From the IMG/VR virus record IMGVR_UViG_3300046167_000825, positions 1 through 64,000 of that record: a stretch of 64,000 nucleotides of DNA. One strand, 5' to 3'. The translations under genes were made by a program, and so were the position numbers. Below the pieces are notes generated by a model that did no database searches, was not told where the DNA came from, and saw only the letters and a program-made list of their open reading frames with translations. Shown here one piece after another: positions 2,325-47,024 of the stretch (positions are counted from its first letter, which is position 1; each line of letters begins with the position of its first letter).

Positions 2325-3143
2325 GTGATGAATAATCTTATTAAACGAGTGGCAGACCGTCACGAGAAGACGGCTAGAATACCAGAGATAGAGGGGAAAT
2401 GGAAAAGGGTTTCCCCCCTCATTGGAACTTGGTTTGAGAACTTGATAACCAAATTGGGTTCTCTTCAAGATAGCATGGCTTATGCCGAGAAGATTGCCGA
2501 CAAAGAGTTCAAGAGAATAGAGAATCTCGTGAAGCGAAAGTATGGGAAAACCGATAATTGGGAAGATGACGAGTACGAAGATCCTTTAGTTCAAGCCTAT
2601 TATTGGATAGACGATTTCTGGGGTCAAGTGAGATCGGGGAGATATGCAGAACTCAACAAGTTTCAACGAAAAATCGAAGAAGCGAAGACAGCCCTTGAAG
2701 AGACAATCTATGATGTCAATAGTTGGGGTTCGCACGCTACTCGACTAGCAAGTGAGACGAAAGAGGCAGCAATTTACCGAGATAACGCATTAAAGAATCT
2801 TGTGTCTTTTCTTGTGAAAGCATACACAAGAAACAAACCCTCTCGACCCGAATATCAACAGATAGGCAACTCGGAAGGGTACGGACTCACCATCGGAAGA
2901 GATGCAGATAAAGAGGCGAAGCGTATCGCTAATGTTTTCTTGAAAGTTCTTAAACGGATAGGCGACAAGGATTTCTTCCAAGACAAGACCTATTCGGATG
3001 ATTACGAAACCTCTATTATCTTCACAAAGAAACCCAATGAGAATGGTCAAGGCATGAAAGTTCAGATCATTCTTGACAATAGAAAAAATGACATGGGTGA
3101 GTTTCTCAAAGACCGCTTCCAAGTTTATATCTGGGAAGAGTAA
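2325..3143 (+). CDS. Hypothetical late protein with N-terminal RVADRH...KTA tag (possible internal head protein)
   Basis: Strong RBS; N-terminus MMNNLIKRVADRHEKTA matches a motif in other late ORFs. Confidence 0.75.
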   Translation: MMNNLIKRVADRHEKTARIPEIEGKWKRVSPLIGTWFENLITKLGSLQDSMAYAEKIADKEFKRIENLVKRKYGKTDNWEDDEYEDPLVQAYYWIDDFWGQVRSGRYAELNKFQRKIEEAKTALEETIYDVNSWGSHATRLASETKEAAIYRDNALKNLVSFLVKAYTRNKPSRPEYQQIGNSEGYGLTIGRDADKEAKRIANVFLKVLKRIGDKDFFQDKTYSDDYETSIIFTKKPNENGQGMKVQIILDNRKNDMGEFLKDRFQVYIWEE

Positions 3144-3149
3144 TCTCTG

Positions 3150-3190
3150 AAAAATCTTCCTTTCCAGTTCTGGGAAGGAAGATTTTTTTT
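3150..3190 (+). terminator. Intrinsic terminator
   Basis: AAAATCTTCCTTTCCAG-TT-CTGGGAAGGAAGATTTT followed by T tract. Confidence 0.8.
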
Positions 3191-3374
3191 GGCTTGGATG
3201 TGTAGTTACAACCCTTTAGTTCGTTATCCTAGTTCGCTAGGATTTTTTTGTGCTTAAAAACCCTAGAAAAATCAAGGGGTTATCCTAGTTCGGTTTTCAA
3301 AGAAACCCCTTTTGGGGTTGTATGCCTTTTGAGTTTTCGTATACTTCCCACACAATACATAGGAGGTATTACTT

Positions 3375-4118
3375 ATGACTACAAATCAATCAGAGCCAAT
3401 CGTTACGGATAAGGGTATTGCTTGGACTAGCAAGACTTGGAATCCGATGACGGGTTGTTCCAAGATATCCCCAGCATGCAAGAACTGTTATGCTAAAACC
3501 CTTGCAGATCGAATGAAACTTCATCCGAACGCTAAAGTGGCAGATAGATACCGTCACGGCTTCACTCCAACTCTCCAAGCCGATAAACTCGGTGAGCCAT
3601 ACAAGTGGCGTGGTTCTCACTGGGTGTTCGTAAACTCAATGAGTGATATCTTCCATGAGGACTTTTCTTTGGCTTATATCCAAGCCGTATTCGATGTCAT
3701 GAACCGTACTCCCCAACACAACTACCAAGTCCTCACAAAGAGGTCAGAGCGTATGCTGGAACTGTCAAAGCATCTCACTTGGTCAGACAATATTTGGATG
3801 GGTGTTTCTGTTGAAGATCAGAAGCGACAGTATCGTATCGAACATCTTCGTCAGATGCCCACAGAGAACCGTTTCTTGTCTATTGAGCCTCTCCTAGAGC
3901 CTTTACCCTTCCTAGACCTCACGGGCATTGGCTGGGTTATTGTAGGGGGCGAGAGTGGCAAAGGACATAGACCTATCAAAGAGAGTTGGGTGACACCTAT
4001 CCGTGATTACTGTTTGCGTGAGAGTATTCCGTTCTTTTTCAAGCAGTGGGGTGGAGCGAGATCAAAATCTAATGGTAAGGAACTTCAAGGGCAACAATGG
4101 TGCGAGATGCCAGCCTAG
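3375..4118 (+). CDS. Phage Gp37/Gp68 family (DUF5131) radical-SAM-like protein
   Basis: IAWTSKTWNPMTGCSKISPACKNCYA, FVNSMSDIFHE, QVLTKR, FLSIEPLL, WVIVGGESG and PFFFKQWGG are hallmark motifs of the family. Confidence 0.92.
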   Translation: MTTNQSEPIVTDKGIAWTSKTWNPMTGCSKISPACKNCYAKTLADRMKLHPNAKVADRYRHGFTPTLQADKLGEPYKWRGSHWVFVNSMSDIFHEDFSLAYIQAVFDVMNRTPQHNYQVLTKRSERMLELSKHLTWSDNIWMGVSVEDQKRQYRIEHLRQMPTENRFLSIEPLLEPLPFLDLTGIGWVIVGGESGKGHRPIKESWVTPIRDYCLRESIPFFFKQWGGARSKSNGKELQGQQWCEMPA

Positions 4119-4141
4119 TCTGTTTTTTAAGCATGATCTTG

Positions 4142-4186
4142 CCTAGAGTTTTTCGGTGTTTACTCGAAAAACTCTAGGTTTTCTTT
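4142..4186 (+). terminator. Intrinsic terminator
   Basis: CCTAGAGTTTTTCG / CGAAAAACTCTAGG 14-bp stem followed by TTTTCTTT. Confidence 0.75.
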
Positions 4187-4219
4187 CTATTCTCTTCCTT
4201 AATAATTAGGAGGTGTGGG

Positions 4220-4342: not shown

Positions 4343-4396
4343 TTGGGGTCGCTTCTTTGATATCTTTCCGTATAGGGGACACACAAGGAGCAACCA

Positions 4397-4672: not shown

Positions 4673-4685
4673 ACATCTCGCCTCA

Positions 4686-4699
4686 ATAACTCGGCTATA
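4686..4699 (+). promoter_or_regulatory. Putative late promoter motif ATAA-N6-TATA
   Basis: ATAActcggcTATA at the head of the 4735-9526 operon. Confidence 0.55.
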
Positions 4700-4734
4700 C
4701 AAAACCCTTTCATATACAATGAGAGGGTTTTTTT

Positions 4735-6132: not shown

Positions 6133-6134
6133 TT

Positions 6135-10933: not shown

Positions 10934-10971
10934 GGGGGTTGCCTCTGGTTGGAGGGGTAAACAGATTCTTG

Positions 10972-10985
10972 ATAATCTGTTTATA
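10972..10985 (+). promoter_or_regulatory. Putative late promoter motif ATAA-N6-TATA
   Basis: ATAAtctgttTATA before the 11008 ORF. Confidence 0.6.
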
Positions 10986-11007
10986 ATAATGAGAGAAAGA
11001 AAGGAGC

Positions 11008-11556
11008 ATGACAATGAAACGACATTTACTGGCTTTGTTAAACCGAACTCGTGGGGGACACATGTTCCACGAGGTGCAGAAGCGAATCAACGGAACTCAA
11101 GACTCTGCTGAAATGAGTGCTCAAGAAATGGAACAATGGTATCGGTTCGTGACCAATGCCGTAGAAGATGCCAAGATGTCAGCACAGAATAATCCTCGTG
11201 GTTTTGGTCGATATGCCCAACGAGTTGCTACTCGATATCTTGAAGCGAGAATTGATATGGATGGCACTTTGAAAGATGCCCCTAACAGTCAAGATTGGTG
11301 GGATGGTGTGAGCAATCTTCTGGCTCAGTACGTTTCAAGAAAAAGGGGTCAGAGAGTTACTGATGTGATTCGTGTAGTTCAACCCAATGGTTTCACACAC
11401 AACTGGGGTGGGGTAGAAATCACACTGATCGAGAATAATGGTCGGGTGGATTTTCTTGTTAATGGGAAGAGCCACGGCACATCTAGGCTAAACGATTCTT
11501 ACACCACCAAGAGAATGGTTACAGTTCTTAAAAAGACCTACAAGATATTTAATTGA
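11008..11556 (+). CDS. Hypothetical two-domain late protein with internal RYAQRVATRYLEA tag
   Basis: AAGGAG RBS; motif shared with other late ORFs. Confidence 0.72.
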   Translation: MTMKRHLLALLNRTRGGHMFHEVQKRINGTQDSAEMSAQEMEQWYRFVTNAVEDAKMSAQNNPRGFGRYAQRVATRYLEARIDMDGTLKDAPNSQDWWDGVSNLLAQYVSRKRGQRVTDVIRVVQPNGFTHNWGGVEITLIENNGRVDFLVNGKSHGTSRLNDSYTTKRMVTVLKKTYKIFN

Positions 11557-12744: not shown

Positions 12745-12815
12745 GGGTAATACTCCTTATGGGGGGGTGACATCTTTTATACGCAAAGCCAAACATAAAA
12801 CGATCCCTCTTTTGA

Positions 12816-12829
12816 ATAATCCCCTTATA
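12816..12829 (+). promoter_or_regulatory. Putative late promoter motif ATAA-N6-TATA
   Basis: ATAAtcccctTATA. Confidence 0.6.
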
Positions 12830-12853
12830 TATTCTTTGATGTAGGAGAACCTA

Positions 12854-13288: not shown

Positions 13289-13307
13289 AGTCGATTTCTG
13301 CGTGTCG

Positions 13308-13321
13308 ATAATCGGTCTATA
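13308..13321 (+). promoter_or_regulatory. Putative late promoter motif ATAA-N6-TATA
   Basis: ATAAtcggtcTATA before the tail sheath gene. Confidence 0.62.
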
Positions 13322-13361
13322 AAGTAACCATTTCTGACAGAATACATTATGCGAGGTAAAT

Positions 13362-16300
13362 ATGGCATTCCCAAGTTCAATCTATGCACCCCCAAGTGTT
13401 TACACCAAAACCAATTTTGATTCACCTTTGAGTGGAGCATTGGCTGGTGTGAAGATTCCAGTTCTCATTGGAACGGGTAGCGAAATCTTATCACAACCCG
13501 ATCTTGAGTTAGTTCGAGGTTCTAGTTCTAGTGTCGACCAACAAATTGTCCAAGAAGACATGTCGGGTCGCATTGTGGCTTCTGAGTTGGCTTCGGGAGA
13601 AGTCGTTCTCGGTTCTTATGACGGAACAACAAACCAAGTTCAAGTTCGCAACTTCCCGATAGTCACTGGGGATGGTTCTGGAACAACTACCACCAAACCA
13701 AGCGATGTCAGTGTTTCTCTAAATGGAGAACCCGTTGTTGTTTTGGCTATTGATGGAGCGAAGGGATTATTGACACTTTCTGAATCACCGAAAATGGGAG
13801 ATTCTTTGAAGGTGACCTACTTCTTCAATCGAACTGACACTTTGACAACCGATGAGGTTTCTGCTCAAGTTTCTGAGGATTCTGCTTTGGTTTATCTAGC
13901 GAAGGCTGGAAACTATAAAGTATTCCCATCTTCTTCTGATACTCTCCTTCTGACTGTTGATGGGGTTTCCCTCGTAATAACTCTCGTTGGGGATGCTTCA
14001 AATGAAATCACAGCGGCTTCTCTCGTCACTCAGATTAAGTCTGGTGCTGGGGTGACTTCTCTTGATGCCACAACATACACCAACAACGAAGGGAACACTT
14101 CTGTGGCTCTCTCTGCTGATAAAGAGATTGTTGTTGGTAGTGGTTCTGCAAACTCTTCTCTTGGGTTGTCTGCTGGAACATCGACTGGTCGTAACAAGAC
14201 TTTTTATGTCTTCAATGGCCCTATCGTAGATGGTTCTAACGGCGGTGTTACAACTACTGATGTTGCTGATGTGACTGTCAAGGTAGATGGGGTTCAAGTT
14301 ATTCCGTCTAGCGTTGATGGGTTCTCTCGTGCTGTGACTTTATCTGTGCCACCCGCTAATGGAAGCACTGTCACTATCCAATACTATTTCAACACTTGGC
14401 AAGATACCTTTGATTATCTCGCACACACGGGTATCACTGAAGTGACTCTTGCTGGCTTCTCGGCTGGGAAAGGTGATTTCATTCAAGGTGTTGATTTCAT
14501 TCTTAAAGATGACAAGATTCTTTGGGGAACGGGTGTTATCGTTGAAACTTCTGTTTCATCTCAAGGATATTCTCTGTTTGGTGAGAACCAAATCACAGCG
14601 AACTTGGTTGATAACAAAGGATACCTTGAGCCTTGTTCTGCTGTTGTTGATACTTCCGTATCTCCAGCGAAAGAAAGCAAGACCGAGTTCAGACTTCCTT
14701 TCGTACCAACCACTGGAAATGGTCGTGGAACTCCAATCGGGATTTCATTGTTCCAAACAGTATCTAATGGTCGTATTGATCTCCCAACAAATCGCCCCGA
14801 CCTTGTGAAAGCATATTGGGGATTCTCTATTCAAGACGCTCTTGATCGTGGGGAAGTTTCAGTTCTGTCTGTTGATCATGCAAGTGCTTCTATCACTCTC
14901 CGTGACCCAGTTCCTACTGGTGCTATGGTTTGGGCTACACAGTATTACAATGTCATTCAAGATTCTGAGTACTCTGTTGTTTGTGAAACTGCTGGTGTTT
15001 CTGGTGTGGGGACATACTCCATCTCAGACAAGAGTGGTTCTGGACTTGTTATTCCTCAGTTCGTTGCAAAGAGTGCTGGATTATCTACTGTCACTATCGA
15101 GTTCCCAAGTGGGTCTGAATTGTTGAGTGATGTTCGTTATGAAACACCACACAACACCAAGTCCTTCAGTGGTGCAGTCGAAGAAGAAATCACGGTTACT
15201 TTTTCTGACAAAGCAGCAACTCCAGCGGCACATACTTTCAGTTCGACTGGCGAGTTCGCTTTCATTGACGGACAAAGTGATAGCATTGAGATTACAGTTG
15301 ATGGCGTACCCGCTTCTTCTGCTCTTTCTGCTGTGGCACACCAAGCACACATCACTGGTGCAGAACTCGTTTATGGCGATCCCTCTGCTCAAACAATGAA
15401 TGTTTCTGCTGGTCTCGATGATTCTCTCATTCTCACCGTTGATGGTTTGCAAGTTGATGTCACATTGACCTCTGGTGCTACAGTTGCTATCGGTGATTTG
15501 ATTGACGATATCAATATGGCAGTTGATGGTCAGATTCCTCGATTGACTGGTGCGAGCAAGTTCGTGAGTGCTTACGAGATTACGGCAGACAATAGCGATT
15601 TTACAATCAATGTCGATGCTACTCCTCATGCTATCTCCATTGATCTTGGCTCTTACCCTACGGCTTCTGCTCTTGTGACTAACATCCAATCCAAGATCGA
15701 TGCAATTCCCGCTATCGATAGTGGTGCTGGTACAGATGTCAAAGTTGTTGCGGCAGTTGATTCTTCTGGACATATCTACTTTACTTTTGAGCGAGTGGGT
15801 AATGTTGAGAAAGCGAAACTGACTAGTGCAACTCAATGGTTGAAGCAGTTCGGATTCGATGAGAGCGAACTGTTCATCGGTAATGGTCTTGGTGGTTGGT
15901 TCGCTTGTGCGACATTGGACTCAATGCCAACTGTCGGTGGTGACTCGTACTATGACCGTATCATTCTCCGAAACCGTATTCTCCCAGCAGATAAACTAGG
16001 GGAAGCCCAAGCAAGTATTCAGATTGATGTGACGACAGCCCAAGATATTCTAGGGTTATCTATGGCTCAGTATGGTGAGGCACACGCTACCACTACTGTC
16101 AAACCAGCCTCTCTTGTAGGAGAAATCGGTTTAACTGGCTCACAAGCAACTGGTGATGGTGCATACCCACAAGTGACCTTGTATCCAAGTGGTTCTACCA
16201 ATCCTCAGAACAACATCCTTCTTCTGACTATTGATGGAACAACACACGAGGTTGTCTTCACACAGAAAGACGGAACTGCTTTGACTGAATCTGGTCATGA

Positions 16301-18182: not shown

Positions 18183-18241
18183 GTTGGTATGCAAGTTCAA
18201 CTCAAAATGGTATAATGCTCAAAACTTCGGTGGAGGGTGTT

Positions 18242-21815: not shown

Positions 21816-21821
21816 TTTTCA

Positions 21822-21835
21822 ATAAATACTTTATA
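21822..21835 (+). promoter_or_regulatory. Putative late promoter motif ATAA-N6-TATA
   Basis: ATAAatacttTATA before the tail tube gene. Confidence 0.6.
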
Positions 21836-21899
21836 TCTCTGTATCATTAAGGTGGGGAGTTTATTCTCCCCTCTATAAAACAATCAAAGAGGTGTAATA

Positions 21900-22688
21900 A
21901 TGGCTAATCAAGATATGAACCCACAAAATGGCGTTCAAGGTTCTTCGTATTTGTACCAGTATGGCACAACCCCCAACACTCGTATCGTTATGAGTCAGAA
22001 GGTACGCCTTTTGACACCAGCATACGGTGGTGGCGATCAGTTGTACCAAATTGGTCTCGTATCAGATTTTTCTGGTGTTTCTCAAAGTAAATCACATGAG
22101 GTTGCTCGTGGTATTGGTTTCGGTGACCATATCGCAGAAATCGTCCCTGGTGTAACTTCCGAAGTGGGGATTTCGATAACTCGTGCGTTGATGTACTTGT
22201 CTAATATTTGGCAAGCGACTGGTTATGCTGGTGGAGTCGATGGTGCAGTTCGCTCATTGAAGCATCACAGATGGCCCTTCGATTTGGAATACCAATTGGT
22301 TTTCTCTACTTTGGCAGATGCAGACCTTTCGGGGTCATTCGCAACAGCAAATGACACTAGTACAAAAGCAAAGTCAAGCGAGCCTTTTCATGGTGGGCAT
22401 AAGAACTTGACCTACCCACAAGTTTCTGGTGGAGTTCAAGACACCACGCACAGTGTTTTAATCACAATGTACGAAGCGTGTTGGTGGACTTCTTGGGATC
22501 AAGCCAATATGACAGCAGACGGTGGGATGGTGACAGAGAGTGGTGATGCTCAAGTGACAGATGTTCACGATTATTCATCCACTTACGGTGAGTTCCTTGC
22601 TAGTGGTAATGACCCATCAATCGGTCAGAGAGCATCTATTCGTTATGGAACAACACCAAAAGGCGTTTCAGCACCAACACTTGGGTAA
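21900..22688 (+). CDS. Tail tube protein
   Basis: RGIGFGDHIAEIVPGV, RWPFDLE, ITMYEACWWTSW; position before chaperones and tape measure. Confidence 0.78.
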   Translation: MANQDMNPQNGVQGSSYLYQYGTTPNTRIVMSQKVRLLTPAYGGGDQLYQIGLVSDFSGVSQSKSHEVARGIGFGDHIAEIVPGVTSEVGISITRALMYLSNIWQATGYAGGVDGAVRSLKHHRWPFDLEYQLVFSTLADADLSGSFATANDTSTKAKSSEPFHGGHKNLTYPQVSGGVQDTTHSVLITMYEACWWTSWDQANMTADGGMVTESGDAQVTDVHDYSSTYGEFLASGNDPSIGQRASIRYGTTPKGVSAPTLG

Positions 22689-34915: not shown

Positions 34916-36013
34916 ATGAGTTTTGATTTTCAGATAGGGTTTCCTTGCCCACATTATATTGTTGAAGAACATGTCGAACTGTCTGCTGATAGGAGAGGCA
35001 TCGTCACCCGTTATCCCATTGCTGCTAAGGGGACAGTGTCCATTCTTATCAATGACGAGTTCTTTGTTCCCCAAAGGGGATTGGCTTCGAGAGCCGTTTT
35101 GAGGGGAGGGCAGAGTGGCCCCTATCGTGTAGGGAAGCACGAGGATGAACTGACGGTTTCCAATCAAGACAGTTCATTCACGGTCAAAATCCCACATGGA
35201 CTCCGTATCCCCACTGATGACCTCGTGGTTTTATTCAATAAGGCTTTCAAGTCGAAGGGTGAACAGTTCATTTTTGCGACCAATGTGTCGGGTTTCCTCA
35301 TTTTTTATGATGTGGCTAGTTCGGGTGGGAAGTCAAGGATTCTCGTGACGGGTTCGGCTGTTAATACATTGGGTTTCAAACAGAGGGGTATGAAGGGTCG
35401 TCTTTTATATCCAGCGTGGGTGTTGGAGAAGCAGTTGTCTTCTGATGGTGAGTTCTACGGAAGATTCTTGAGATTCACGAAGCCTCTCAAGAACAACCCC
35501 CTCATTAAAGTGTCCTATACCACCCCAGCAGAACAATGTGTTCGTTGTCGTTCCACTTATGTCGAGAATGATTACAGATATGACAGCAAGGGTGATATGA
35601 AACTCATAACGAATGAGGATCTCCTTTACCAAGCCTCCTTGAAAGCCCTCTTGACCATCAAGGGGAGTAACCCTTATTACAGATGGTACGGCACGAACTT
35701 GTTGAACGCCATTGGGAAGAAGGCTGTTCTAGGGCTACAAAACGCCATCAAACAAGAGATATCATCAGCCCTCCAGACATTTCAGCAAGGGCAGTTGGCA
35801 CAAGCCAAGTATCAAACGGTATCATCTAAGGAGAGATTATTCTCTTTGAGCAGTGTGGAGGTTTATCCACACGAGACAGACCCAACGGCATTTCTTGCTG
35901 AGGTGGTCATTGTCAATGCTTCCCAAGAACCCATTTCGCTTTCTGTTATATATACTGCCCCAAGTGCAATCGCTTTGGCGGGGTCGAATGGAAAGTCGCT
36001 AGGAATACGATGA
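34916..36013 (+). CDS. Baseplate wedge / sheath initiator (gp25/GpW-like C-terminal domain)
   Basis: LLYQASLKALLTIKGSNPYYRWYGTNL; precedes baseplate J. Confidence 0.75.
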   Translation: MSFDFQIGFPCPHYIVEEHVELSADRRGIVTRYPIAAKGTVSILINDEFFVPQRGLASRAVLRGGQSGPYRVGKHEDELTVSNQDSSFTVKIPHGLRIPTDDLVVLFNKAFKSKGEQFIFATNVSGFLIFYDVASSGGKSRILVTGSAVNTLGFKQRGMKGRLLYPAWVLEKQLSSDGEFYGRFLRFTKPLKNNPLIKVSYTTPAEQCVRCRSTYVENDYRYDSKGDMKLITNEDLLYQASLKALLTIKGSNPYYRWYGTNLLNAIGKKAVLGLQNAIKQEISSALQTFQQGQLAQAKYQTVSSKERLFSLSSVEVYPHETDPTAFLAEVVIVNASQEPISLSVIYTAPSAIALAGSNGKSLGIR

Positions 36014-36020
36014 GGATATT

Positions 36021-39000
36021 ATGAGAAAACCACAAGTATATAAGCCCGATGGCGAACTAACTGACCAGTTCACATACAAGACGACAATCCCAGAGAAGTT
36101 CTTCTCTGGTTTGCTGCCTCCCAACACAGTCGATGTTCAAATCTCTATTCGTGGTGGGGCTTTTGTGTCCAATCCCGATCTCATTGTTTTTGAAGATAGA
36201 GCGTGGTCAGCCCCCAATCCCGAAGTCTACCCCAATGGGTTGGAGTTAATCGCGGGGGAGAACCACATCCAAATCAGAACAATCGGAACGAGAGGTGATA
36301 CCTCTGAGATTCTTGATATCAAAGTCACGCTCATCCAAGATGATTCTATTTATGCCCTCTCAAAACCACCCACCAATCTATCACTATCTCGTGAGAGAGA
36401 TACCGTCACAGTCACTTGTGAAGGTGTGGTTGACCCCAATGTCATAGGATACAACTTCTATGCTGCCACAGAGCAAGGTGGGGGTGGTGTGGGCTATTCT
36501 CGTATCAATCTCAATACCATCCGTTCGGGGGAAACCATTGAGGATTTCGTGGAACTCCAAGACATCTCTTTCTTAGAAGATGTGGCTACCCAAGATTCGG
36601 GTGACCCCTATTCCGACCCTCAGTATATTTCTGTCATCACGGAACAAAAAGATATTCTCGGGAATGTCTTCCAGAAGAAAGAAAGAGGGATAAAAGAAAT
36701 ACCAGAAGGCACGGAACAACTGAGAATTGCTTACAAGGTTAGTTCAGTTCGCACGACTTCCATGTATTCTTTCAAGCACAATAGATTATTCTCGGAGAAC
36801 TCAAACCCTCCTACAATCTTCAGTTCTGAGTTCACGTCAATCAGCCGTGAAGACTCCTTGTTCTATGTGGCAACGGCTTTGTTTTTCGATGACATCAACA
36901 GCATTGAGTACGAGAGTGTTTTTTCAGTGGAAGTTATTGGGAGTCCCTTATTGGTATCCCTTGTGGGGAGCAATCTCCCTCAAGTATCCCGAAATCAAAT
37001 CAGAGAGGATTTCATTTCGTCCGTGTATCGTTCCAATCCCCAACTCCGAGTCGATCCCACATCTGTTCTTTCAGACACCGTCATTGAACCCTTCTCATCA
37101 GAGATGGAGAGGATGCGATTCCTATTGGATTTCTTCAATAAAAGTTCATCCCTCGCTGGGTTATTGCAGATAGACGATCCCAATAACACGGGGCAGTCGG
37201 CTGACATCACAGCCTCTAATTATAAGCGTGCCATTCAGATTGCTTTCCGTATCGACAACTATGCAGACACCCAAGCCTTCATAGATTCGATCATTGAAGC
37301 GAGGGCAATGAACTTCGGTGTGACACGGAGAACCTCCACTCGTTCAAGTGGGGAGATAACTTTTTACGTCACGAAACAACCGACCTCTTCGGTGCAGATA
37401 CCATTGGGGACAGAAGTTTCTGGTGGGGGAGGCACATTCACTACGCTCCAACGGGGCGTTATAAATGTATCGAATATTGCCTCCTATTACAATCCAGCCT
37501 TGAAACGGTGGGAAGTGTCTATTCCAGTCCAAGCCAGCATTGGTGGTTCAAATGGTAATGTCGCACAAGGGCTAGTTCGGTCATCGAACTTGACGGGAGT
37601 TCAACTCACCAACAATGCTGCTTTCTTTGGGGGAGCAGACAGAGAAACCAACAGAGAGTTCATCACGAGAGCCATGAACGCTTTGGCGAGTCATGATGTC
37701 GGAACAGAAAGGGGCTTTCTTCAGTTAGCCGCTGACATCGTGGGAGTACAGAATCTTAAAGTGGTGGCATCGGGACACAATCTCATGCAACGAGATAAGG
37801 ATACTTCTGGTAACCATCGTGGTGGTAAAGTAGATATCTGGGTGCGTTCAGACAACCCCGCCATCGTGACGGATTCCTTTGCTTTCTCTTATTCTTTAGG
37901 GAAAGATGTGACTTTTGAGGTGGTTGGATCACCCACTGACTTAATCTTCAAGGCGATTGATTCTTCCTTGACGGAGGATGCCCCCATTCTGAGATTGCTC
38001 TCAGAAACCGATAGATTTGGTTTCCGTAATGGCTCGACTGGACAATCCTTTGATATCACGGGTGCAAAGGTCATTCAATACAACATGATACAACTCTCCA
38101 CTGAGATCAATCAACCCGATGTTTCTTACGGGGATGTCATTTTTGGGGACTATTATCGACAAGATGGCAATGACCATCTATTCACGAGGCAACCCGTTGA
38201 GTCCATCGTGACCGTAGAGGGAACAATTAGTGGTGTTCTCCCCACAACGGCATACGAGTTGGTCAATCCGAGTGTTCCTCTCGAAACGGGATTCTCTCTT
38301 AACGAAGGTTCTTATCTTCGCATTAAGGGTTTCACAGACGATGGTTCTCGTGTCCCTTCTGGTGATTCTTTGAGTGCCACTGACGAAACACATGTCATCT
38401 TATCGAACTACCCCGAATATCTCAATAATCTAGGGGCTGACCCTCTCACGGTCACGGTCACCAATCTTGAGAAGACTATCACTTATCGTTCTCCGAGTGA
38501 CCCAAGTGGTATATCGGATTTCACTGTCCAAGAGAGAGAGGGCTTTCCTTTGGCTGTTTTCTTGACGGACAACTCTGAGATACGCTCTGGACAAGAGATT
38601 TTGATTTCGTATTCTTACGGGGAGAACTTCACTGTAACCTACGGGATTTCATCTTCTATTTCCACGACACAGAACATCATCGACCTCAATAAACCTCTCA
38701 CGGCAGATGTCCTAGTGAAGAAAGCGTTGGCTGTTCCAGTGGATGTTGAGGCTACGATTGTTTTGAGCGTGGGGGCTAGTTCGGGAGTGGTTGACAACAA
38801 TATCCGAACGACTCTAGCAAACTTCTTTGCGACACTGACACTAGGCGACCCCGTTCGTCAAAGTGACCTCGTTGAAATAATGGACTCTACTCGTGGTGTT
38901 TCTTATGTCATTCTCCCTATAACAAGAATGACACGCCAAGAGGCAGCAATGGTTCTCCGTGAATCTTTAGTTGTGGGTTCTTTGTCTGATTACACCCCTC

Positions 39001-39512
39001 TCCCAAATGTGAGTGGTGTGGCAGATGTTTATCTCCTTCAAAATCAATTGGATTTCGTAGCCCAAGAGGGTGGTGGTTCAGAAGAAGATTTCAGAGGGGT
39101 TTTCCAAGATCAAGTCCTCCTCGAAACCTTATCACAACCCAACAACTATTATATCGGTTCTGGTGTGGGGAGAGCGTACATCATCGGTGACGGGGGCTTG
39201 TCTATTCAAGGGTTCAGTGATGACTTAACTCTTTCCAATGAAGGCTTCACACCCAATGAGTACGCCACAGTTCGGAAAGAGCGAACTGGGAATAGGGTTA
39301 TGATTTCCACACCCAAGAACAAATTACCAACAGAGTGTTCTTATTCTGTGACCTATTATGTGGGTTATGACAAGGCAGTCAAAAACATCGACCCCATTGA
39401 TGCTGAGTATCTAACTCTCGGAAATATCTCTCTCACATACGAAGAAGATTCGGCACAAGTCCGAACACTCCAGACGGGTTCTTCTTTGCGTAGTGGTGGG
39501 GGGTCGTACTGA
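36021..39512 (+). CDS. Baseplate J / gp6-like wedge protein with extra Ig/FN3 domains
   Basis: NFGVTRR..SSGEITF, GGSNGNVAQG, FFGGADRETNREF, GGKVDIWV, LGDPVRQSDL..GVSYV. Confidence 0.88.
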   Translation: MRKPQVYKPDGELTDQFTYKTTIPEKFFSGLLPPNTVDVQISIRGGAFVSNPDLIVFEDRAWSAPNPEVYPNGLELIAGENHIQIRTIGTRGDTSEILDIKVTLIQDDSIYALSKPPTNLSLSRERDTVTVTCEGVVDPNVIGYNFYAATEQGGGGVGYSRINLNTIRSGETIEDFVELQDISFLEDVATQDSGDPYSDPQYISVITEQKDILGNVFQKKERGIKEIPEGTEQLRIAYKVSSVRTTSMYSFKHNRLFSENSNPPTIFSSEFTSISREDSLFYVATALFFDDINSIEYESVFSVEVIGSPLLVSLVGSNLPQVSRNQIREDFISSVYRSNPQLRVDPTSVLSDTVIEPFSSEMERMRFLLDFFNKSSSLAGLLQIDDPNNTGQSADITASNYKRAIQIAFRIDNYADTQAFIDSIIEARAMNFGVTRRTSTRSSGEITFYVTKQPTSSVQIPLGTEVSGGGGTFTTLQRGVINVSNIASYYNPALKRWEVSIPVQASIGGSNGNVAQGLVRSSNLTGVQLTNNAAFFGGADRETNREFITRAMNALASHDVGTERGFLQLAADIVGVQNLKVVASGHNLMQRDKDTSGNHRGGKVDIWVRSDNPAIVTDSFAFSYSLGKDVTFEVVGSPTDLIFKAIDSSLTEDAPILRLLSETDRFGFRNGSTGQSFDITGAKVIQYNMIQLSTEINQPDVSYGDVIFGDYYRQDGNDHLFTRQPVESIVTVEGTISGVLPTTAYELVNPSVPLETGFSLNEGSYLRIKGFTDDGSRVPSGDSLSATDETHVILSNYPEYLNNLGADPLTVTVTNLEKTITYRSPSDPSGISDFTVQEREGFPLAVFLTDNSEIRSGQEILISYSYGENFTVTYGISSSISTTQNIIDLNKPLTADVLVKKALAVPVDVEATIVLSVGASSGVVDNNIRTTLANFFATLTLGDPVRQSDLVEIMDSTRGVSYVILPITRMTRQEAAMVLRESLVVGSLSDYTPLPNVSGVADVYLLQNQLDFVAQEGGGSEEDFRGVFQDQVLLETLSQPNNYYIGSGVGRAYIIGDGGLSIQGFSDDLTLSNEGFTPNEYATVRKERTGNRVMISTPKNKLPTECSYSVTYYVGYDKAVKNIDPIDAEYLTLGNISLTYEEDSAQVRTLQTGSSLRSGGGSY

Positions 39513-40777
39513 TGTCAAAGAAACTGTTCCCTCAAAGTGTGACCCAAAACCCTTCTTCTCTCAAAGAACAAGGGCAAGAGTATCAAGTTCAAGTTCGTGA
39601 GCAAGTCGAACTCATCTTGAAGCAGTTCCTAGCAGTCCTCCCTTCTAACTATGTGTCTCAAACGACAGCACCTTTTTATACTGTCCAGTTCCAAGCAATG
39701 GCAGAGGCAGTAGCCCGACTCCAATTAGGACTCCAAGAATCCTTGAAAGATTCACTCTATGAGTTCACGAGGTCGGAGTTCCTTTGGCAGATGTTGGGGG
39801 TGATGGTCTTCCCGAAAGTCTACCACAACAAGATGCAGATACCCCTCATAGACAAGGACACTGATTACCGTGACTTCTTACGGGCAATGGTAGTTCTCCT
39901 CCTCAAAGGAACAAAGCATGCCCCTATCCAAGAGGGTACGAACCTTCTGACGGATGCTACGGTCACTCTCATAGAGAAAGCCCTCACAGCAAATCAAGAG
40001 GGTTCAGCGTGGGGTTATGACGATTTACACACCTTTGAGGTAAATGTCGAAAAGGATGGGGGGACTTCTTTTCCAGACCGACCTTTTGATTTGGAATACA
40101 ACATTTCGGTTATCCTTGATGCGTTGAAGCCAGCCTATACAATATATGAATACCGTCATGTTTTTCGTGAAACATTTGGGCATATCTTTCAAGATGAAAT
40201 GTTTGCGAACTTAGATATGTACGAGTATGATGACCTCCGTAAATACTGTGGGGGAGCGAAAAGAATACATGGGGAAGGGGAAGTTCTATCGGGCAGATTT
40301 CTGTTGTCGGATTCAGACCGTTTTTTTGATAATATCGGAACACCAGCGTATCTGATTGTTGAGGACAAACGCTATGAAGTTTCAGAAATACTTTCTTTTC
40401 CTATGGGTGATGACCCTACTCCCCGTCATTACACAACCAGTTCGGGGTTGGAGGGATATGCAACCATCGAGGGGGATACCCTCACCGACAAATGTCAAAA
40501 CTGGGTATTGGCAAAGGAAGGTGAGAAAATCACTTTCCACGAAGGGGCGAACACGGGAGTCTATCGTCTGAAAGATGTTCTAGGCTCGGATGGTGGGAGT
40601 GTTGGTTTCGTCACGGGATCAAGCACTCAAGTTCGGGTGGGGAAATCTATCGTTCGGACAACCACTCGTTTACCCGTTGGGGTATCTTTCCCCTACGAAC
40701 TGTCTGTTGATAGACTAGGTGTTCAAATAGAAAGAACCCGCACACAAGAAAATCTCACACTCCAATGTGTCCTTTGA
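39512..40777 (+). CDS. Baseplate wedge protein (gp7/GpI-like)
   Basis: LPSNY, DTDYRDFLR, ILDALKPAYT; directly follows J. Confidence 0.7.
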   Translation: MSKKLFPQSVTQNPSSLKEQGQEYQVQVREQVELILKQFLAVLPSNYVSQTTAPFYTVQFQAMAEAVARLQLGLQESLKDSLYEFTRSEFLWQMLGVMVFPKVYHNKMQIPLIDKDTDYRDFLRAMVVLLLKGTKHAPIQEGTNLLTDATVTLIEKALTANQEGSAWGYDDLHTFEVNVEKDGGTSFPDRPFDLEYNISVILDALKPAYTIYEYRHVFRETFGHIFQDEMFANLDMYEYDDLRKYCGGAKRIHGEGEVLSGRFLLSDSDRFFDNIGTPAYLIVEDKRYEVSEILSFPMGDDPTPRHYTTSSGLEGYATIEGDTLTDKCQNWVLAKEGEKITFHEGANTGVYRLKDVLGSDGGSVGFVTGSSTQVRVGKSIVRTTTRLPVGVSFPYELSVDRLGVQIERTRTQENLTLQCVL

Positions 40778-40790
40778 TAATTTATTTATA
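40777..40790 (+). promoter_or_regulatory. Putative late promoter motif ATAA-N6-TATA
   Basis: ATAAtttattTATA. Confidence 0.6.
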
Positions 40791-40818
40791 AAGTGTTTTG
40801 TAGAAACTGGAGAAGACA

Positions 40819-41763
40819 ATGAAACTGGAAGAACGTGTAGCCCAAAGACACTTGATAAAAACATCATGTGAAGAAGTGGCTAGGGGGATATCTAAAAGCC
40901 GAGTGGCTAGTTCGCAAAGAACTGTTCGAGATGAACTGGGGAATCCAGTGATCCTAGCCTCGTTTTTTGACCCCAATGTTCGGGTGTCTTCGAGAGGCAT
41001 CCTAACGAAAGCGAAAGAGTTGTGGAAGGCTTTCAAAACAGCCCCCGATAAATGGGAGGAGTTCAAAGAGAAACTCGGATTGGCTGGCGTGAGTACTCTC
41101 GCTCTCATGAAAGAGTTCCCTAAAAAGATGAAAGAGTTCTGGGGCAAAGCCAACGAACTAATCAAAAAAACCTTCGCAAAGGCTGGTGCTGCTCTTATCA
41201 AGAAGTTCCCCCAGTTGGAAATCTACTTTAAGGTCACTCAGAAACTCCCTTCTGTGACATCGTTTTTCAAGAATCTTCTAAATAAGTTCCCCAAACTGAA
41301 ACGGATGCTCGATGCTGTGGCAAGTAAAGCATCAACGCTCGCCAATACTGTCGATGGCTTTTTTCAAAAGAACTCTTTGTTGAAGCCCGCGAATTGGTTC
41401 GCTCGTGGTGCGTTCTTCACTTATATTTGGATGAATGTCGCTGAAATATCGTGGAATGTTCCCGAAATAATGAGAGGGATGCTCGGAGGTATGTCTTGGG
41501 CTGAGATTTTATCTTCTCTCCCAGAGAGTGGTTTGGGATTGGTGGTTTCTTTGTTGTTCGGTGCTTTCATACCATTCCCTTTCGGAGGAGCATTTGCCTC
41601 TAAAATCGGACTAAATGCTTTATTGCCTATGGCACTTGCCTTTCAGATATGGTTTCTCGTGTCGAAAGGGTATGCTTACATCAAAAGGGGTGTGTTGTAC
41701 TTCACAGATAAAGTGAAGACCTTTGGGATTGATATCATCACTGATATTGCCCTCCCCCTTTGA
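40819..41763 (+). CDS. Late membrane-active protein with RVAQRH...KTS tag
   Basis: Lys-rich amphipathic helices followed by 2-3 hydrophobic segments. Confidence 0.7.
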   Translation: MKLEERVAQRHLIKTSCEEVARGISKSRVASSQRTVRDELGNPVILASFFDPNVRVSSRGILTKAKELWKAFKTAPDKWEEFKEKLGLAGVSTLALMKEFPKKMKEFWGKANELIKKTFAKAGAALIKKFPQLEIYFKVTQKLPSVTSFFKNLLNKFPKLKRMLDAVASKASTLANTVDGFFQKNSLLKPANWFARGAFFTYIWMNVAEISWNVPEIMRGMLGGMSWAEILSSLPESGLGLVVSLLFGAFIPFPFGGAFASKIGLNALLPMALAFQIWFLVSKGYAYIKRGVLYFTDKVKTFGIDIITDIALPL

Positions 41764-41767
41764 ACCA

Positions 41768-41781
41768 ATAACTAGACTATA
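41768..41781 (+). promoter_or_regulatory. Putative late promoter motif ATAA-N6-TATA
   Basis: ATAActagacTATA. Confidence 0.6.
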
Positions 41782-41812
41782 TTTCTATTGAAAATGAATG
41801 TGAGGTGATTCT

Positions 41813-43122: not shown

Positions 43123-43584
43123 ATGGAGCCCCTAACAATCGGAATAATTTGCTTTCTAGGTGGTGGTTTGATCACTGGTGGCACTATTTTTGGTGTTCAG
43201 AAAGCCAATGAGAATAAAATCCAAGAAACCACAGAACTAGTGGCTGCCATTGGTTCTTTGAAAGACCAACTAGGAGAAGGTCAGAAGCAAGTGATGATTA
43301 ACTTGACTGACCAAGACCTTCTCAAAGAGGCTTGTTCCGTGGCTTATCTGAAAGAACAAGGAGACTCTCTTTGTAGAGAAATGTTCTGCCGTATGCAGAG
43401 CAGAGGTCTTGATAAAGGTGCAACCACAACCGAATGTGAGAATATTTCCCACATCACAAACTCGAAAGCACGCCTAGAGACTTGTATGCCCTACTGGGGC
43501 GAAGACACCATCCTCGATGATGGTGGTTTCAATAAGAACTCAAAGTATGCAATATGTATGACTATTTTTAAGGAGAGAGAATAA
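43123..43584 (+). CDS. Membrane-anchored protein with Cys-rich C-terminal domain
   Basis: AAGGAG RBS; TM LTIGIICFLGGGLITGGTIFGV, coiled coil, six further Cys. Confidence 0.65.
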   Translation: MEPLTIGIICFLGGGLITGGTIFGVQKANENKIQETTELVAAIGSLKDQLGEGQKQVMINLTDQDLLKEACSVAYLKEQGDSLCREMFCRMQSRGLDKGATTTECENISHITNSKARLETCMPYWGEDTILDDGGFNKNSKYAICMTIFKERE

Positions 43585-44249
43585 TGTCTTCCCCAAGATC
43601 ACAAGAAGAACGAGATATGGTAGAGCGTATCATTCTTTATGCAATGAATGACCGAGCCGTTTTGAAAGATGTAGGGCGGGCTGTCAACAATGCCTATCAA
43701 GAGTATATGAAAGAACTTATCAGTGAAGCGAAAAATGATTTCAAAGCCTTTGAAAAATACATTGTGGCTGAAATCAATAAGCGTAGAGCACCAGTCCCAG
43801 AGCGAAGTGTCCGTGACTACATGCCTCACGATGGTTTCCCTTTGGGTGACCCACGCTACCGAGAAGATGGTCGTTATGCTTCTTCTGTTAGTTCGATAGC
43901 CGATAGACACACAAATACAGTGACTGTAAAAAAACCCCGTGTCGCTTCAAAAAACGCTTTGGTTATTACCAACCAAAGATACAATAATAGAGTTTTTGAA
44001 CTAACACAACTAGGGAAGTCTTTGCCCGATTTTTTGAAAGCACCTTTGATGAAAGAAATAGAGAACACGGCTTGGTGGTACATCAATACTTACAGAGGTC
44101 AGATTAAGGGTAACTTTAAGTATGACAAGGGAGTCATTTTTTATCCAGACGATTTCAATGATCAATTGGAAGCCAAGAATCTTTGGAAACTAAACGACAA
44201 AGCCTTCGATATTTTAACTTCTGAGTCTTGGTTGCACTTTGACGACTAA
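43584..44249 (+). CDS. Hypothetical two-domain late protein with internal RYA..SIADRH..RVAS tag
   Basis: TAATG coupling; motif shared with other late ORFs. Confidence 0.7.
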   Translation: MSSPRSQEERDMVERIILYAMNDRAVLKDVGRAVNNAYQEYMKELISEAKNDFKAFEKYIVAEINKRRAPVPERSVRDYMPHDGFPLGDPRYREDGRYASSVSSIADRHTNTVTVKKPRVASKNALVITNQRYNNRVFELTQLGKSLPDFLKAPLMKEIENTAWWYINTYRGQIKGNFKYDKGVIFYPDDFNDQLEAKNLWKLNDKAFDILTSESWLHFDD

Positions 44250-44262
44250 AAGGTAGAATCCT

Positions 44263-45960
44263 ATGAAAAATCTTGATAAAAAAACATTGATTCGTATGGC
44301 GTATGAAAAACCCGAAATGCGTTCAAAAATCTTGCCTCTCATCAAGAAGATGGCTCAGTTTCGCTTCATTCAAGATGGCGAACTAGACGGTTTGTCTAAC
44401 GCAGACATCGTTGAAATGGCAGAAGCGAAGTTCGGGAAAGCCTTCGACAAAGTTGATGTTGCTAGTATTCGGAAAGTGAATGGGAAAGTTCGTATAACGG
44501 CTTCCGTTCAAGTTGATATCGGTGCTGGTTCAAATGAAGTAGCAGAAATCGCTCGTGAATACGGGATAGGGATACTTGCTCCAACGGGTGCTACTCCAGA
44601 GATCCAACCGACAGAACAGTCTGTCGACATGGAAACCGTCCGTGACACCCCGTTCCCAACTCGTGAAACAGTCCGTAATGTCGTTGTGGTTTCTCCGAAT
44701 AGTTCAAACGACAGTGCTTCCAGCCGAGAAGACGAAGTTTCAAGAGCCAGAGGTCAAGTTTCTCGTGCCAATATCAGCATTTCTCCGAGAACCCGTACCC
44801 AGTTCCGAAATAAAGCGAGGAGTTTAGGGAACATCGTAGATTCTGTGCATCGTGGCACAAGTCATCCGTCACCAACTCACAGTGGTATGATTGATGGTGT
44901 TAAGATTTCCATTACAGTCGTAGGGAATACCCCCGAAGAAAGAGCCGCAGATGCTTACAAGAAGTTCCTTGAACTGAAAGGAAACTTCCCTAACGCTTCG
45001 TTGGTAACAGACTTCTACATTCAAGGGGATACCTTGTTCATCATTATTGCAGATGCACAAGTTCCAGAGGACACCTCTGCTATCGCTGAAGCCCGTAGTT
45101 CTTTCAATGCCTTCCAAAACATGAGTGGTGGCAGTTCTTCCTATGAAGAAGAATACTCTGAGGAAGAATACTCCGAAGAAGATGAAGTCAGTGGGCAACG
45201 TGAACGAGAGAGCATTCGAGAAGAAGAGATACGCCTAGAAAACGAGCGAAACGAACGGCTTGACAGAGAACGCCAAGAGCGACAACGTGAAATGGCGAGA
45301 GAACGAGCAGAGAGAGACCAACGAGCAGTTGAAGTCGCTCAAATGATGGCAGAACGCCAAGAAGCCCAGCAAGCACAATCTCCAGCACCAGCGAAGGGTG
45401 ATTATGTGATGAAAGACGGGTCAGCCATTCCGAACTCTGTTTTCGTGGCTGGTTATCTGAAAGGTATTGAGTATGCAAGACGAAATCGGGCAGTTCAAGA
45501 AAGATACGGTTTTGATCGTAATGGCAACCCCATCCCAGCAAATCAAATATATAAGTGGAATCATGACACTGCTAGTGGTTGGTTAAGACGATTGGCACGA
45601 GAACCCGAACTAGAACTCTCAAAAGCACAAGCCAGCACAATGAACTCGACACTGGGTTATAAAAAACCTAAGTCTCAGCGTAGTGGTATTGCTTCTCCTC
45701 ATATCCTCAAGGGTGTTTATGAGGCTGTCCGTGAATACTCAGATGTTGACTCTCGTTCTATCCCAAGCAAGACTTGGTTCATAAAGAACTTTGGTTTCGC
45801 TGATGGGTATCAAGGTCAGAACTCCACAGAAGCATACGCTCATTCTAATATGCGACAAAGCAGACAAGCCAATGACGAAACTCGTGCGAAGTTGATTCGA
45901 TTGGCATACGAGAAACCAGAACTCCGTTCCAAGATTCTTCCTTTGTTGAAAGAAGACTGA
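44263..45960 (+). CDS. Late protein bracketed by two copies of LIRxAYEKPExRSKILPLxK; acidic and ER-rich middle
   Basis: Terminal 20-aa repeats visible in the translation. Confidence 0.75.
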   Translation: MKNLDKKTLIRMAYEKPEMRSKILPLIKKMAQFRFIQDGELDGLSNADIVEMAEAKFGKAFDKVDVASIRKVNGKVRITASVQVDIGAGSNEVAEIAREYGIGILAPTGATPEIQPTEQSVDMETVRDTPFPTRETVRNVVVVSPNSSNDSASSREDEVSRARGQVSRANISISPRTRTQFRNKARSLGNIVDSVHRGTSHPSPTHSGMIDGVKISITVVGNTPEERAADAYKKFLELKGNFPNASLVTDFYIQGDTLFIIIADAQVPEDTSAIAEARSSFNAFQNMSGGSSSYEEEYSEEEYSEEDEVSGQRERESIREEEIRLENERNERLDRERQERQREMARERAERDQRAVEVAQMMAERQEAQQAQSPAPAKGDYVMKDGSAIPNSVFVAGYLKGIEYARRNRAVQERYGFDRNGNPIPANQIYKWNHDTASGWLRRLAREPELELSKAQASTMNSTLGYKKPKSQRSGIASPHILKGVYEAVREYSDVDSRSIPSKTWFIKNFGFADGYQGQNSTEAYAHSNMRQSRQANDETRAKLIRLAYEKPELRSKILPLLKED

Positions 45961-45961
45961 A

Positions 45962-46375
45962 ATGAAGAACTGGAAGCCCATATTCATTGAGAACTCACGG
46001 ATACCCGTTTGGTTGAGTAAATTGTCCCCTATCAATATAGGGGCAATCACTCTAGGTATCCTCGTGATATCCCGTGATGAGATGAGTGAGCAGACGAAGA
46101 ACCACGAAACGATACACTACCAACAGTATCTCGACTTGTTCTTCATTGGTTTCATTCCTCTCTATCTGTGGGATTGGGCTTTGGGTCTTTGGCATCACCG
46201 AAAGGGCAACATTGCTTACTACTCAATACGAGCAGAGCAAGAAGCCTATGTCAATGACACGAACATGAACTATCTCCAAGAACGGAAGAGATGGTCTTGG
46301 ATAAAGAACTACAAAGTGAAAACACCCCCCTATCTTGACACTTTGAAAGAAAACTTGGAGAAGAATAATGTCTAA
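45962..46375 (+). CDS. HExxH zinc-metallopeptidase-like membrane protein
   Basis: NHETIHYQQ, TM segment, AYYSIRAEQEAY. Confidence 0.7.
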   Translation: MKNWKPIFIENSRIPVWLSKLSPINIGAITLGILVISRDEMSEQTKNHETIHYQQYLDLFFIGFIPLYLWDWALGLWHHRKGNIAYYSIRAEQEAYVNDTNMNYLQERKRWSWIKNYKVKTPPYLDTLKENLEKNNV

Positions 46376-47024
46376 ATCTATACGAAATATTGCCGACCGA
46401 TATATGATGGCAGCCACGAAAGGCTACTTTATCCATCGATCACCGAATCCAAGAAAACAACCCTCGATTATCTACATATCAGACGGACGTAATGTCATCT
46501 ATTTGGAAACTGGTGGGAGATACAAAGGCAAGTTCGTACCCATTGAGAGTGCCAAGATGCCACCTTTGTCTGAAATGGATTCTTTGCCTATAGGAAAGAC
46601 ACACATGGGTATCATTATTGACGGCAATATCGTGTCTGAGATAGCCTCTGTGCTTGGTGACCCTTCTTATGAGGTGGTAGCCCCCTCATTGGGTTTGGTG
46701 CGAGATATAACCTACTCAGCCCCATTCAACCCAAAGCAAGAGTGGGATATGCTCATAGGTCAGCCCATAGCCTACGGTGAGCCTACTGGTATCCCAGAGA
46801 TAGATAAGAAGCATGGTTTGACCAACTATTCTGAGCATTACAGAGGTGATACTGTTGATGTGATAAGCGATATCCAAGCTGCTTGTGACAGAGCGAACTT
46901 GAAGTGTAAAGCATACGACAAGAAAATGTTTGGTTCATACATCCCTCACATTGAAATTATGGGCGATCCCTCTGCCATTTCAAAGGTGATGAGAAAGTTC
47001 AAGAGTGTGTCTGAGAAAGTATAA
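46368..47024 (+). CDS. Hypothetical late protein with N-terminal RNIADRYMMAA tag
   Basis: GGAG RBS; overlaps the upstream gene. Confidence 0.7.
   Translation: MSKSIRNIADRYMMAATKGYFIHRSPNPRKQPSIIYISDGRNVIYLETGGRYKGKFVPIESAKMPPLSEMDSLPIGKTHMGIIIDGNIVSEIASVLGDPSYEVVAPSLGLVRDITYSAPFNPKQEWDMLIGQPIAYGEPTGIPEIDKKHGLTNYSEHYRGDTVDVISDIQAACDRANLKCKAYDKKMFGSYIPHIEIMGDPSAISKVMRKFKSVSEKV

Follow-up and report, generated by a model that had tools for sequence, protein, structure and literature searches.

The first 64,000 nucleotides (64 kb, hereafter the window) of IMGVR_UViG_3300046167_000825, a single phage contig of 289,014 bp with a GC content of 44.7%, harbour several open reading frames (ORFs) whose products share a short peptide, designated here tag 1. 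This peptide of ~13 residues was detected at the ends or domain joints of 20 to 40 late proteins with no other relationship, both in the phage and in its many environmental relatives, and is a real, clade-wide feature which is selected at the peptide level. Quite possibly, tag 1 is a portable docking peptide that marks late accessory proteins for the virion, most likely for the interior of the head. This is the reading that we tentatively prefer, and the address function it assigns to the tag is well motivated but putative. Since the completeness of the contig was estimated by CheckV at 66%, all tag counts given for this genome are lower bounds.

The sequence-only reading of the window had noted a [RSN][VI]AxR[YH] box on five dissimilar ORFs, N-terminal in three of them and internal in the other two. 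All five boxes (cores RVADRHE, RVATRYL, RVAQRHL, SIADRHT and NIADRYM) were found where they had been described, with the Val/Ile at residue 7-9 in the N-terminal copies and the internal copies at residues 73 and 105. A motif count over the whole proteome, which had been proposed as a check, placed the box far above shuffled proteins: 12 matches were obtained in the 369 called proteins of the genome (a greedy ORF set) versus 0.30 in 200 shuffles (maximum 3). The first 25 residues alone accounted for 6 matches versus 0.14 in shuffles, and the looser core [VI]A.R[HY] gave 14 versus 1.7. Seven of the 12 strict matches are located outside the window in which the pattern was defined, where ~0.23 would be expected, and thus provide an independent validation. 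The back-translated DNA pattern likewise had 12 matches in the genome and its reversed control none, and in an unbiased count of reduced-alphabet 7-mers no other short peptide of the proteome was as widely shared as the tag 1 box.

Taken over 100 distinct copies, the consensus reads (P/A)-S-(A/P/S)-(S/K)-[R/K]-[V/I]-A-x-R-[Y/F/H/W]-[L/A/M]-x-A. The conserved hydrophobic positions are spaced 0, 1, 4, 5 and 8 and are preceded by Ser/Pro, a pattern which suggests a short amphipathic helix; the residue that follows the tag Ala is highly variable in the logo (S, A, R, D, F, Q, H). When Phe and Trp are allowed at the aromatic position, extra C-terminal copies appear in the products of the genes at 76819, 142220, 182347, 265152, 265535 and 170157 (the last a C39-like peptidase), as well as extra internal copies at 253813 and 274336. 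The Arg, Val/Ile and Ala codons vary between the copies, hence the constraint acts on the peptide and not on the DNA. With different codons in use at each position, the box cannot stem from a repeat or regulatory element of the DNA, and this reading was rejected. So was the idea that the carriers are hidden paralogues, all-against-all BLAST connecting them via shuffled domains only, with no common fold. Two loose matches probably represent chance or fold-internal hits, namely SIASRHM within the portal fold and KVADRY within the conserved domain of a DUF5131 (Gp37/Gp68-like) protein encoded at 3375-4118 (Pfam, 5e-91), where it lies at residue 55.

The phage is phage-G-like and not phiKZ-like, because its major capsid protein is homologous to gp27 of phage G (6wkk, E 1e-64) and its portal is nearest to a phage-G-like lineage; a phiKZ-like context was rejected on the evidence of the same two proteins. 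By portal, the nearest records are LR745208.1 (an uncultured phage of 485 kb; 67%), Tunturiibacter phage Tunturi_5 (37%) and phage G (28%), and megablast of the region against GenBank phages returned no match. Three relatives were compared as whole genomes: LR745208 and two genomes designated G1 (297 kb, GC 59.5%) and G2 (227 kb). The tag is enriched in all three, with 39 copies versus 6.7 in shuffles in G1 (up to five of them in one 1519-aa protein), 12 versus 3.1 in G2 and 9 versus 0.58 in LR745208 (core plus Leu/Met/Ile), and the reversed DNA-pattern controls agree with this enrichment. No enrichment was observed in phage G (1 versus 0 in the reversed-pattern control) or in Tunturi_5 (3 versus 1). 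Most of the tagged proteins of our phage have no orthologue in the relatives, and every relative has a tagged set of its own. The residue at tag position +5 is Leu in the AT-rich genomes and Ala in the genome with 59.5% GC.

The tag favours the ends of its carriers. In the genome studied here, 15 of 23 tags lie no more than 25 residues from a terminus, compared to the expected 5.9. N-terminal copies have 6-8 residues ahead of the Val in 31 of 52 cases and never fewer than five, while C-terminal copies end 3-6 residues past the aromatic residue in 14 of 24 cases and never less than three; one relative even carries two tags in tandem at a C-terminus. Such minimal flanks at both ends indicate that the functional unit comprises ~13 residues and that a free end is preferred.

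The ATAA-N6-TATA motif that the earlier reading had placed in front of three of these genes and of the operon with the other two was recovered 36-45 nt upstream of the ORFs at 2325, 11008, 40819 and 41813, and turned out to be part of a longer consensus, AATAATCTnTCTATAT. There are 38 well-scoring AATAATCTnTCTATAT sites in the genome, most of them 25-60 nt upstream of a start codon. As the same motif also precedes the sheath gene, the gene at 21900 and the head genes at 250119 and 253128, it may represent a late promoter. The co-occurrence of tag and motif, another of the proposed checks, is pronounced: 14 of the 21 tagged genes reside in promoter-headed units, compared to 76 of the 323 untagged ones (odds ratio 6.5, p = 7e-5), and eight tagged genes are the first gene of their unit (odds ratio 8.4).

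Within the window, all tagged ORFs and the promoter-like sites in front of them are on the plus strand. The 272-aa ORF 2325..3143, which has no recognisable domain, carries its N-terminal RVADRHE at 2346-2366 and is preceded, at a distance of 37 nt, by a late-type promoter-like site (AATAATCATTTTATA) at 2286..2303. The 182-aa ORF 11008..11556 (isoelectric point, pI, of 10.0), with a site at 10970..10987 (36 nt before it), harbours the internal RVATRYL at 11221-11241 (residue 73), the copy nearest to the consensus within the window. The 314-aa ORF 40819..41763, with a site at 40775..40792 (42 nt before it), combines an N-terminal RVAQRHL (40834-40854) and, 21 residues further on, an R-V-A-S element (40900-40911) with a hydrophobic C-terminal half. 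The site at 41766..41783, before 41813, heads a co-directional run which includes the genes at 43584, 44263 and 46368. Of these, the 221-aa ORF 43584..44249 has an internal SIADRHT at 43893-43913 (residue 105) followed by R-V-A-S at 43938-43949, and the 218-aa ORF 46368..47024, whose relatives found are all near-identical, has an N-terminal NIADRYM at 46386-46406. Pfam and PHROGs returned nothing for the five tag 1 ORFs, and the Atlas feature searches of the window ORFs gave weak leads only, such as a YomN/HK97-gp10-like match (0.94, weak) for the C-terminal part of the 43584 product. Further promoter-like sites of the window are located at 4684-4701, 12814-12831, 13306-13323 and 21820-21837.

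The carriers themselves resemble cargo in several respects. They are basic, with a median pI of 9.1 versus 6.4 (Mann-Whitney p = 0.0015), and among their recognisable domains are topoisomerase IB (Pfam 2.9e-24 in G1, where it occurs together with a HAD_SAK_1 domain), ART-PolyVal ADP-ribosyltransferases (ARTs), which in each of two G1 proteins directly follow a tag or lie between tags, a PolyA_pol-type nucleotidyltransferase head with an N-terminal tag, and C39-like peptidases in G1 and in the 170157 product of our phage. Additional leads include a weak NUDIX match, a SWIM finger and a methyltransferase-like fragment. The two proteins encoded at 265535-266551 (C-terminal tag) and 273892-274332 (N-terminal tag) are extremely rich in Arg/Lys (pI ~10) and look like DNA-condensing internal proteins. 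In the portal-adjoining protein of 981 aa (250119-253064), residues ~167-401 form a topoisomerase IB domain of the poxvirus/bacterial type, with a conserved Tyr in G-x-Y-L-V-P, and behind it come tag 1 and an acidic coiled-coil half; the domain sets of its orthologues differ. A 195-aa protein with an N-terminal tag (79137-79724) displays two H-x-T motifs as in 2H phosphoesterases (Pfam tRNA_lig_CPD, a weak match with E 0.024) and may degrade cyclic or 2'-5' nucleotides. The genes at 74648-76771 and 76819-79140 encode a paralogous pair of 700-aa proteins with no match in Pfam, which contain a Q-G-x-G-x-G motif reminiscent of GNAT acetyltransferases and both end in R-V-A-S followed by a C-terminal tag.

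Where homologues exist in the relatives, the tag is seen at the borders of modules. The tag behind the topoisomerase IB domain of the 250119 product occupies the same place in G1 and forms the C-terminus of a shorter LR745208 protein; the C-terminal tag of the 265152 product is internal in a longer LR745208 homologue. Internal tags at residue 918 of the G1 protein 231505 and at residue 686 of the G1 protein 190585 align with N-terminal tags of stand-alone proteins, and a G1 domain (residues 222-354) flanked by tags at 214 and 355 corresponds to a stand-alone portal-adjoining gene of LR745208. In these alignments tag and domain travel in one piece, as a [tag+domain] module. The portal-adjacent protein is tagged in all relatives. 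The claim of a portable tag on diverse proteins is supported, given the unrelated carriers, the peptide-level selection and the alignment of internal with N-terminal tags.

A second peptide, tag 2, is a portable unit of 27 residues (LR.K[LV]IRLAH.NPELRKDL[LI]PLLKE). Four proteins of our phage contain it: the 565-aa product of the window ORF 44263..45960 (plus strand), where it (LIRLAYEKPELRSKILPLLKED) is located at the extreme C-terminus (45883-45957), and those encoded at 167872, 172840 and 276017. Lineage-specific versions are present in 6-12 proteins of each of the three relatives, and its placement varies between N-termini, C-termini and internal positions. In three of the four copies of our phage a late-type promoter lies directly upstream.

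It had also been proposed that the box is accompanied by a [KR]-x-[AS] junction and that cleavage takes place after K/R-x-A. The generic junction, however, is barely above background past the tag (0.57 versus 0.40 per 20 residues, 81 tags), and as a rule such cleavage is not supported, since its site shows no clear enrichment and many tags lie 3-6 residues from the C-terminus; only the specific R-V-A-S stands out. Outside full tags, R[VI]AS is found 12 times versus 2.6 expected in our genome, 16 versus 4.7 in G1 and 10 versus 1.7 in G2. In the products of 76819, 74648 and 182347, R-[VL]-A-S is situated just upstream of the C-terminal tag, i.e. between tag and body. For the 40819 family an exhaustive search yielded 78 representative clusters, of which 30 carry a strict tag, almost always at residues 6-17. 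The best-kept N-terminal columns of their alignment are the tag Arg and, ~20 residues further on, the Ala of R-x-A-S; with the G-R-V-A-F-like element that comes next, the first 70 residues contain three successive R-V-A-like elements. At residues ~250-290 of many homologues in the same family (P0241-P0317) the hydrophobic C-terminal domain contains a conserved, tag 1-like L-[AG]-x-[RK]-Y-L-E-W. Close to its own N-terminus the maturation protease (470 aa, 254451-255863) displays a conserved motif, W-x-x-[VI]-R-x-A-[SG], and the helix at its C-terminus, [IV]-R-[LV]-[AG]-x-L-L-S, looks like a tag in degenerate form. The protease also contains a Cys-rich zinc-ribbon-like insertion (C188, C191, C202), with no PDB match by sequence. 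A universal architecture in which R-x-A-S follows the tag was rejected, the combination being only about 3-fold enriched. Tags flush with a C-terminus or in tandem make no sense as mere cut sites; docking is therefore ranked first and cleavage is regarded as an add-on in some carriers. Thus, of the original cargo-tag proposal, the portability, the tie to late promoters and the cargo-like nature of the carriers have stood, whereas the K/R-x-A cleavage rule and the analogy to phiKZ have not.

According to the docking reading, tagged late accessory proteins would enter the virion, most likely the head interior, and travel with the DNA. The tag would dock on a conserved assembly component, for which the major capsid protein is the best candidate because no other protein of these phages comes near its degree of conservation. 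The head module of our phage (247-259 kb) comprises the portal (starting at 247181), the 981-aa protein, two very acidic scaffold-like proteins (253128 and 255897), a small zinc-ribbon protein (253813), the protease and the major capsid protein (257761-258672). Across the four genomes the mean identity of the latter reaches 87.5%, compared to 68% for the portal, 64% for a terminase-like protein and 45% for the protease; moreover, its relatives form more than 2000 close clusters in public metagenomes (some of them Tara marine) and occur on 545 IMG/VR contigs, with identities of 85-90% in almost every case. This hyper-conservation fits a hub that is read by many ligands, which is circumstantial evidence. 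The scaffold-like proteins diverge too much to suggest themselves as the partner that reads a tag which does not vary. In the 40819 family, 43584, 76819, 74648 and 182347, the R-[VLT]-A-S between tag and body would in addition be cut by the head maturation protease, and the mature protein would thereby be released, as in the T4 capsid-targeting sequence and the herpesvirus scaffold tail. A bolder version of the docking reading, which we consider unlikely, is an encapsulin-like 'postcode': at least tag 1 and tag 2 would dock inside one HK97-fold capsid, tag plus late promoter would turn any gene into injected cargo, and the need to read dozens of tags would freeze the capsid protein at about 87% identity, even though the remaining genome has diverged past recognition.

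Several observations weigh against the docking reading. Phage G and Tunturi_5 share the capsid fold, yet the tag is not enriched in them. R-x-A-S is present on the body side of ~13 of 187 tags versus ~4 expected, hence a coupling to cleavage is not general. Three of the carriers in the window are located within the tail/baseplate gene block and the lead for 43584, weak as it is, is neck/tail-like, so that 'virion' may be a safer address than 'head'. The virion address itself is predicted from gene content, and a complex prediction with the capsid protein, the protease and residues 1-45 of the 40819 product gave no answer (score 0.00), which counts neither way.

Of the competing explanations, one holds that the tag is chiefly a processing site for a protease (the maturation protease 254451-255863 or the C39-like peptidase 170157), which would cut modular, polyprotein-like proteins, the terminal copies being leftovers of gene fission. 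In the giant proteins, each of which may contain as many as five tags, the tags do bracket domains exactly, and the R-[VI]-A core recurs in the shorter R[VI]AS elements enriched in our genome, G1 and G2, in the three successive elements of the 40819 family and in the conserved motif at the protease N-terminus, the expected place of autoprocessing; for polyvalent proteins, too, processing by peptidases embedded in them has been proposed (PMC5512222). At least ten conserved positions with helix-like spacing would nevertheless be unusual for a protease site, the residue after the Ala is very variable, and tags that start at residue 2-3 or lie 3-6 residues from the stop would yield no product, yet they are kept in orthologues. 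The tandem C-terminal tags of one relative and the lack of a full tag in the acidic scaffold-like proteins, the substrates to be expected, speak in the same direction, and we therefore regard a role chiefly in processing as not very likely.

It is likewise improbable that the tag is a linear motif for a partner outside packaging, be it a chaperone, a degron-reading machine, a DNA or RNA contact or a replication hub. Degrons and the motifs bound by clamps or chaperones are typically terminal as well, the carriers are basic and several of them contain nucleic-acid enzymes (topoisomerase IB, the methyltransferase-like fragment, SWIM), seven tagged genes of our phage lie outside recognisable late promoter units, and the complex prediction named no receptor. 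Against a function of this kind speak the strong tie to a promoter common to head and tail genes, the tagging of portal-adjacent and scaffold-adjacent head genes in all relatives, and the absence of the consensus tag from the recognisable proteins of core replication or recombination in our phage (RecA, SNF2 helicase, clamp loader and Mre11-like). Nor does the tag fit the consensus of Tat, beta-clamp, PIP or ssrA signals; Tat, beta-clamp/PIP/APIM, PP1 RVxF and ssrA-type degrons were all rejected on spacing and position. Tat signals (N-terminal S/T-R-R-x-F-L-K, then a hydrophobic stretch) differ in that tag 1 has a single Arg directly before the aromatic residue, no hydrophobic region after it and many C-terminal copies. 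That the box has no function at all and reflects chance, composition, hidden paralogy or a DNA element read through is hardly credible: it would account for a few loose matches such as those in the DUF5131 protein and the portal, but chance is ruled out by the shuffles, the reversed-pattern controls and the matches outside the window, the codons differ between copies, and the carriers have no other similarity and bear the tag at different ends.

As a portable docking peptide, tag 1 recalls the T4 capsid-targeting sequence (CTS) of IPI-III and Alt, a short portable peptide on unrelated basic late proteins, with which it shares a candidate cleavage element past the tag in some carriers. The T4 carriers are packaged and injected, whereas packaging is predicted here from gene content. 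The T4 sequence is also strictly N-terminal, about 10 residues long and unrelated in sequence, and is cut by gp21 at (L/I)-x-E; tag 1 may be N-terminal, C-terminal or internal, occurs up to five times per protein, has no conserved Glu and is accompanied by R-x-A-S in a minority of cases only. The propeptides of phiKZ and SPN3US head proteins differ in the same way, as they are cut at S/A/G-x-E by a gp175/gp245-type protease in chimallivirus-like phages, and the analogy to phiKZ drawn in the earlier reading is not applicable to a phage with a gp27-type capsid and a tag devoid of the Glu of T4 or phiKZ sites. Encapsulin cargo-loading peptides are similar in being short terminal peptides on diverse cargo, at either end (flush termini are seen in tag 1 as well). 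They dock on the inner face of an HK97-fold shell, and the capsid protein to which tag 1 would bind is HK97-fold and unusually conserved. Encapsulins are not viruses, however, and the family 1 consensus is Gly/Ser/Leu-rich, compared to S-x-x-R-V-A-x-R-aromatic-L.

The herpesvirus scaffold tail, with its V/L-x-A|S site, and the HK97 protease tail are terminal docking helices with a nearby Ala-Ser between tail and body. These tails are confined to the scaffold or protease and are not found on dozens of cargo proteins, and cleavage is only presumed here. The assemblin-type V/L-x-A|S site has a small P1 Ala and a P1' Ser; within tag 1 the residue after the Ala is variable, and a separate R-[VLT]-A-S is enriched and kept in some families. 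The Dar system of phage P1 loads anti-defence enzymes into the head via terminal signals (N-terminal in DarB and its partners) and injects them, but the P1 cargo is not known to share a consensus peptide and is loaded hierarchically via DarA/Hdf.

A repertoire of polyvalent-protein domains has been predicted to be packaged in capsids and injected (Iyer, Burroughs, Anand, de Souza, Aravind 2017, PMC5512222), with the head-packaged and injected ADP-ribosyltransferase Alt of T4 as the cited precedent (PMC5512222). The carriers of tag 1 offer a similar assortment of ART-PolyVal, peptidase, nucleotidyltransferase, NUDIX, 2H-like, GNAT-like and DNA-enzyme domains, and share with polyvalent proteins the portal/head gene neighbourhood, the shuffling of domains and the predicted delivery with DNA. 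Two G1 proteins combine at least two effector domains, as polyvalent proteins do (14816, HAD_SAK_1 plus Topoisom_I; 231505, ART-PolyVal plus shared domains), and with regard to a location among portal/head late genes, the topoisomerase IB protein adjoins the portal in our phage, LR745208 and G1. In contrast to polyvalent proteins, many of the modules are stand-alone genes, united as a class by the tag only. No common inter-domain or terminal peptide is described in PMC5512222, from which the word 'linker' is absent, and the phage G multi-omics paper (PMC12484599) contains nothing on such peptides. As far as the searched literature shows, tag 1 is undescribed so far and would belong among capsid-targeting or cargo-loading peptides.

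Functions are known for only a minority of the genes of huge phages, and this very abundant clade has no cultivated member. A label for carried-in proteins would make it possible to rank candidates for host takeover and anti-defence effectors in the accessory genome, and would explain by module shuffling how effectors are recruited. If the docking reading is true, tag 1 would be a natural and very short handle for packing foreign proteins into large capsids, and it would concretely explain why the capsid protein is so oddly hyper-conserved in the clade. Should the postcode version hold as well, sequence alone would reveal which effectors are injected by thousands of huge phages that have not been cultivated.

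The window also holds a tail module, with the sheath gene at 13362-18119 and baseplate genes at 34916-39512. A large ORF of 3376 aa on the minus strand (51021-61151) is without tag 1. Directly after the sheath gene, a 513-aa ORF (18215-19756) encodes a protein with an HNH/homing-endonuclease-like C-terminal domain (PHROG 9084, 5e-7).

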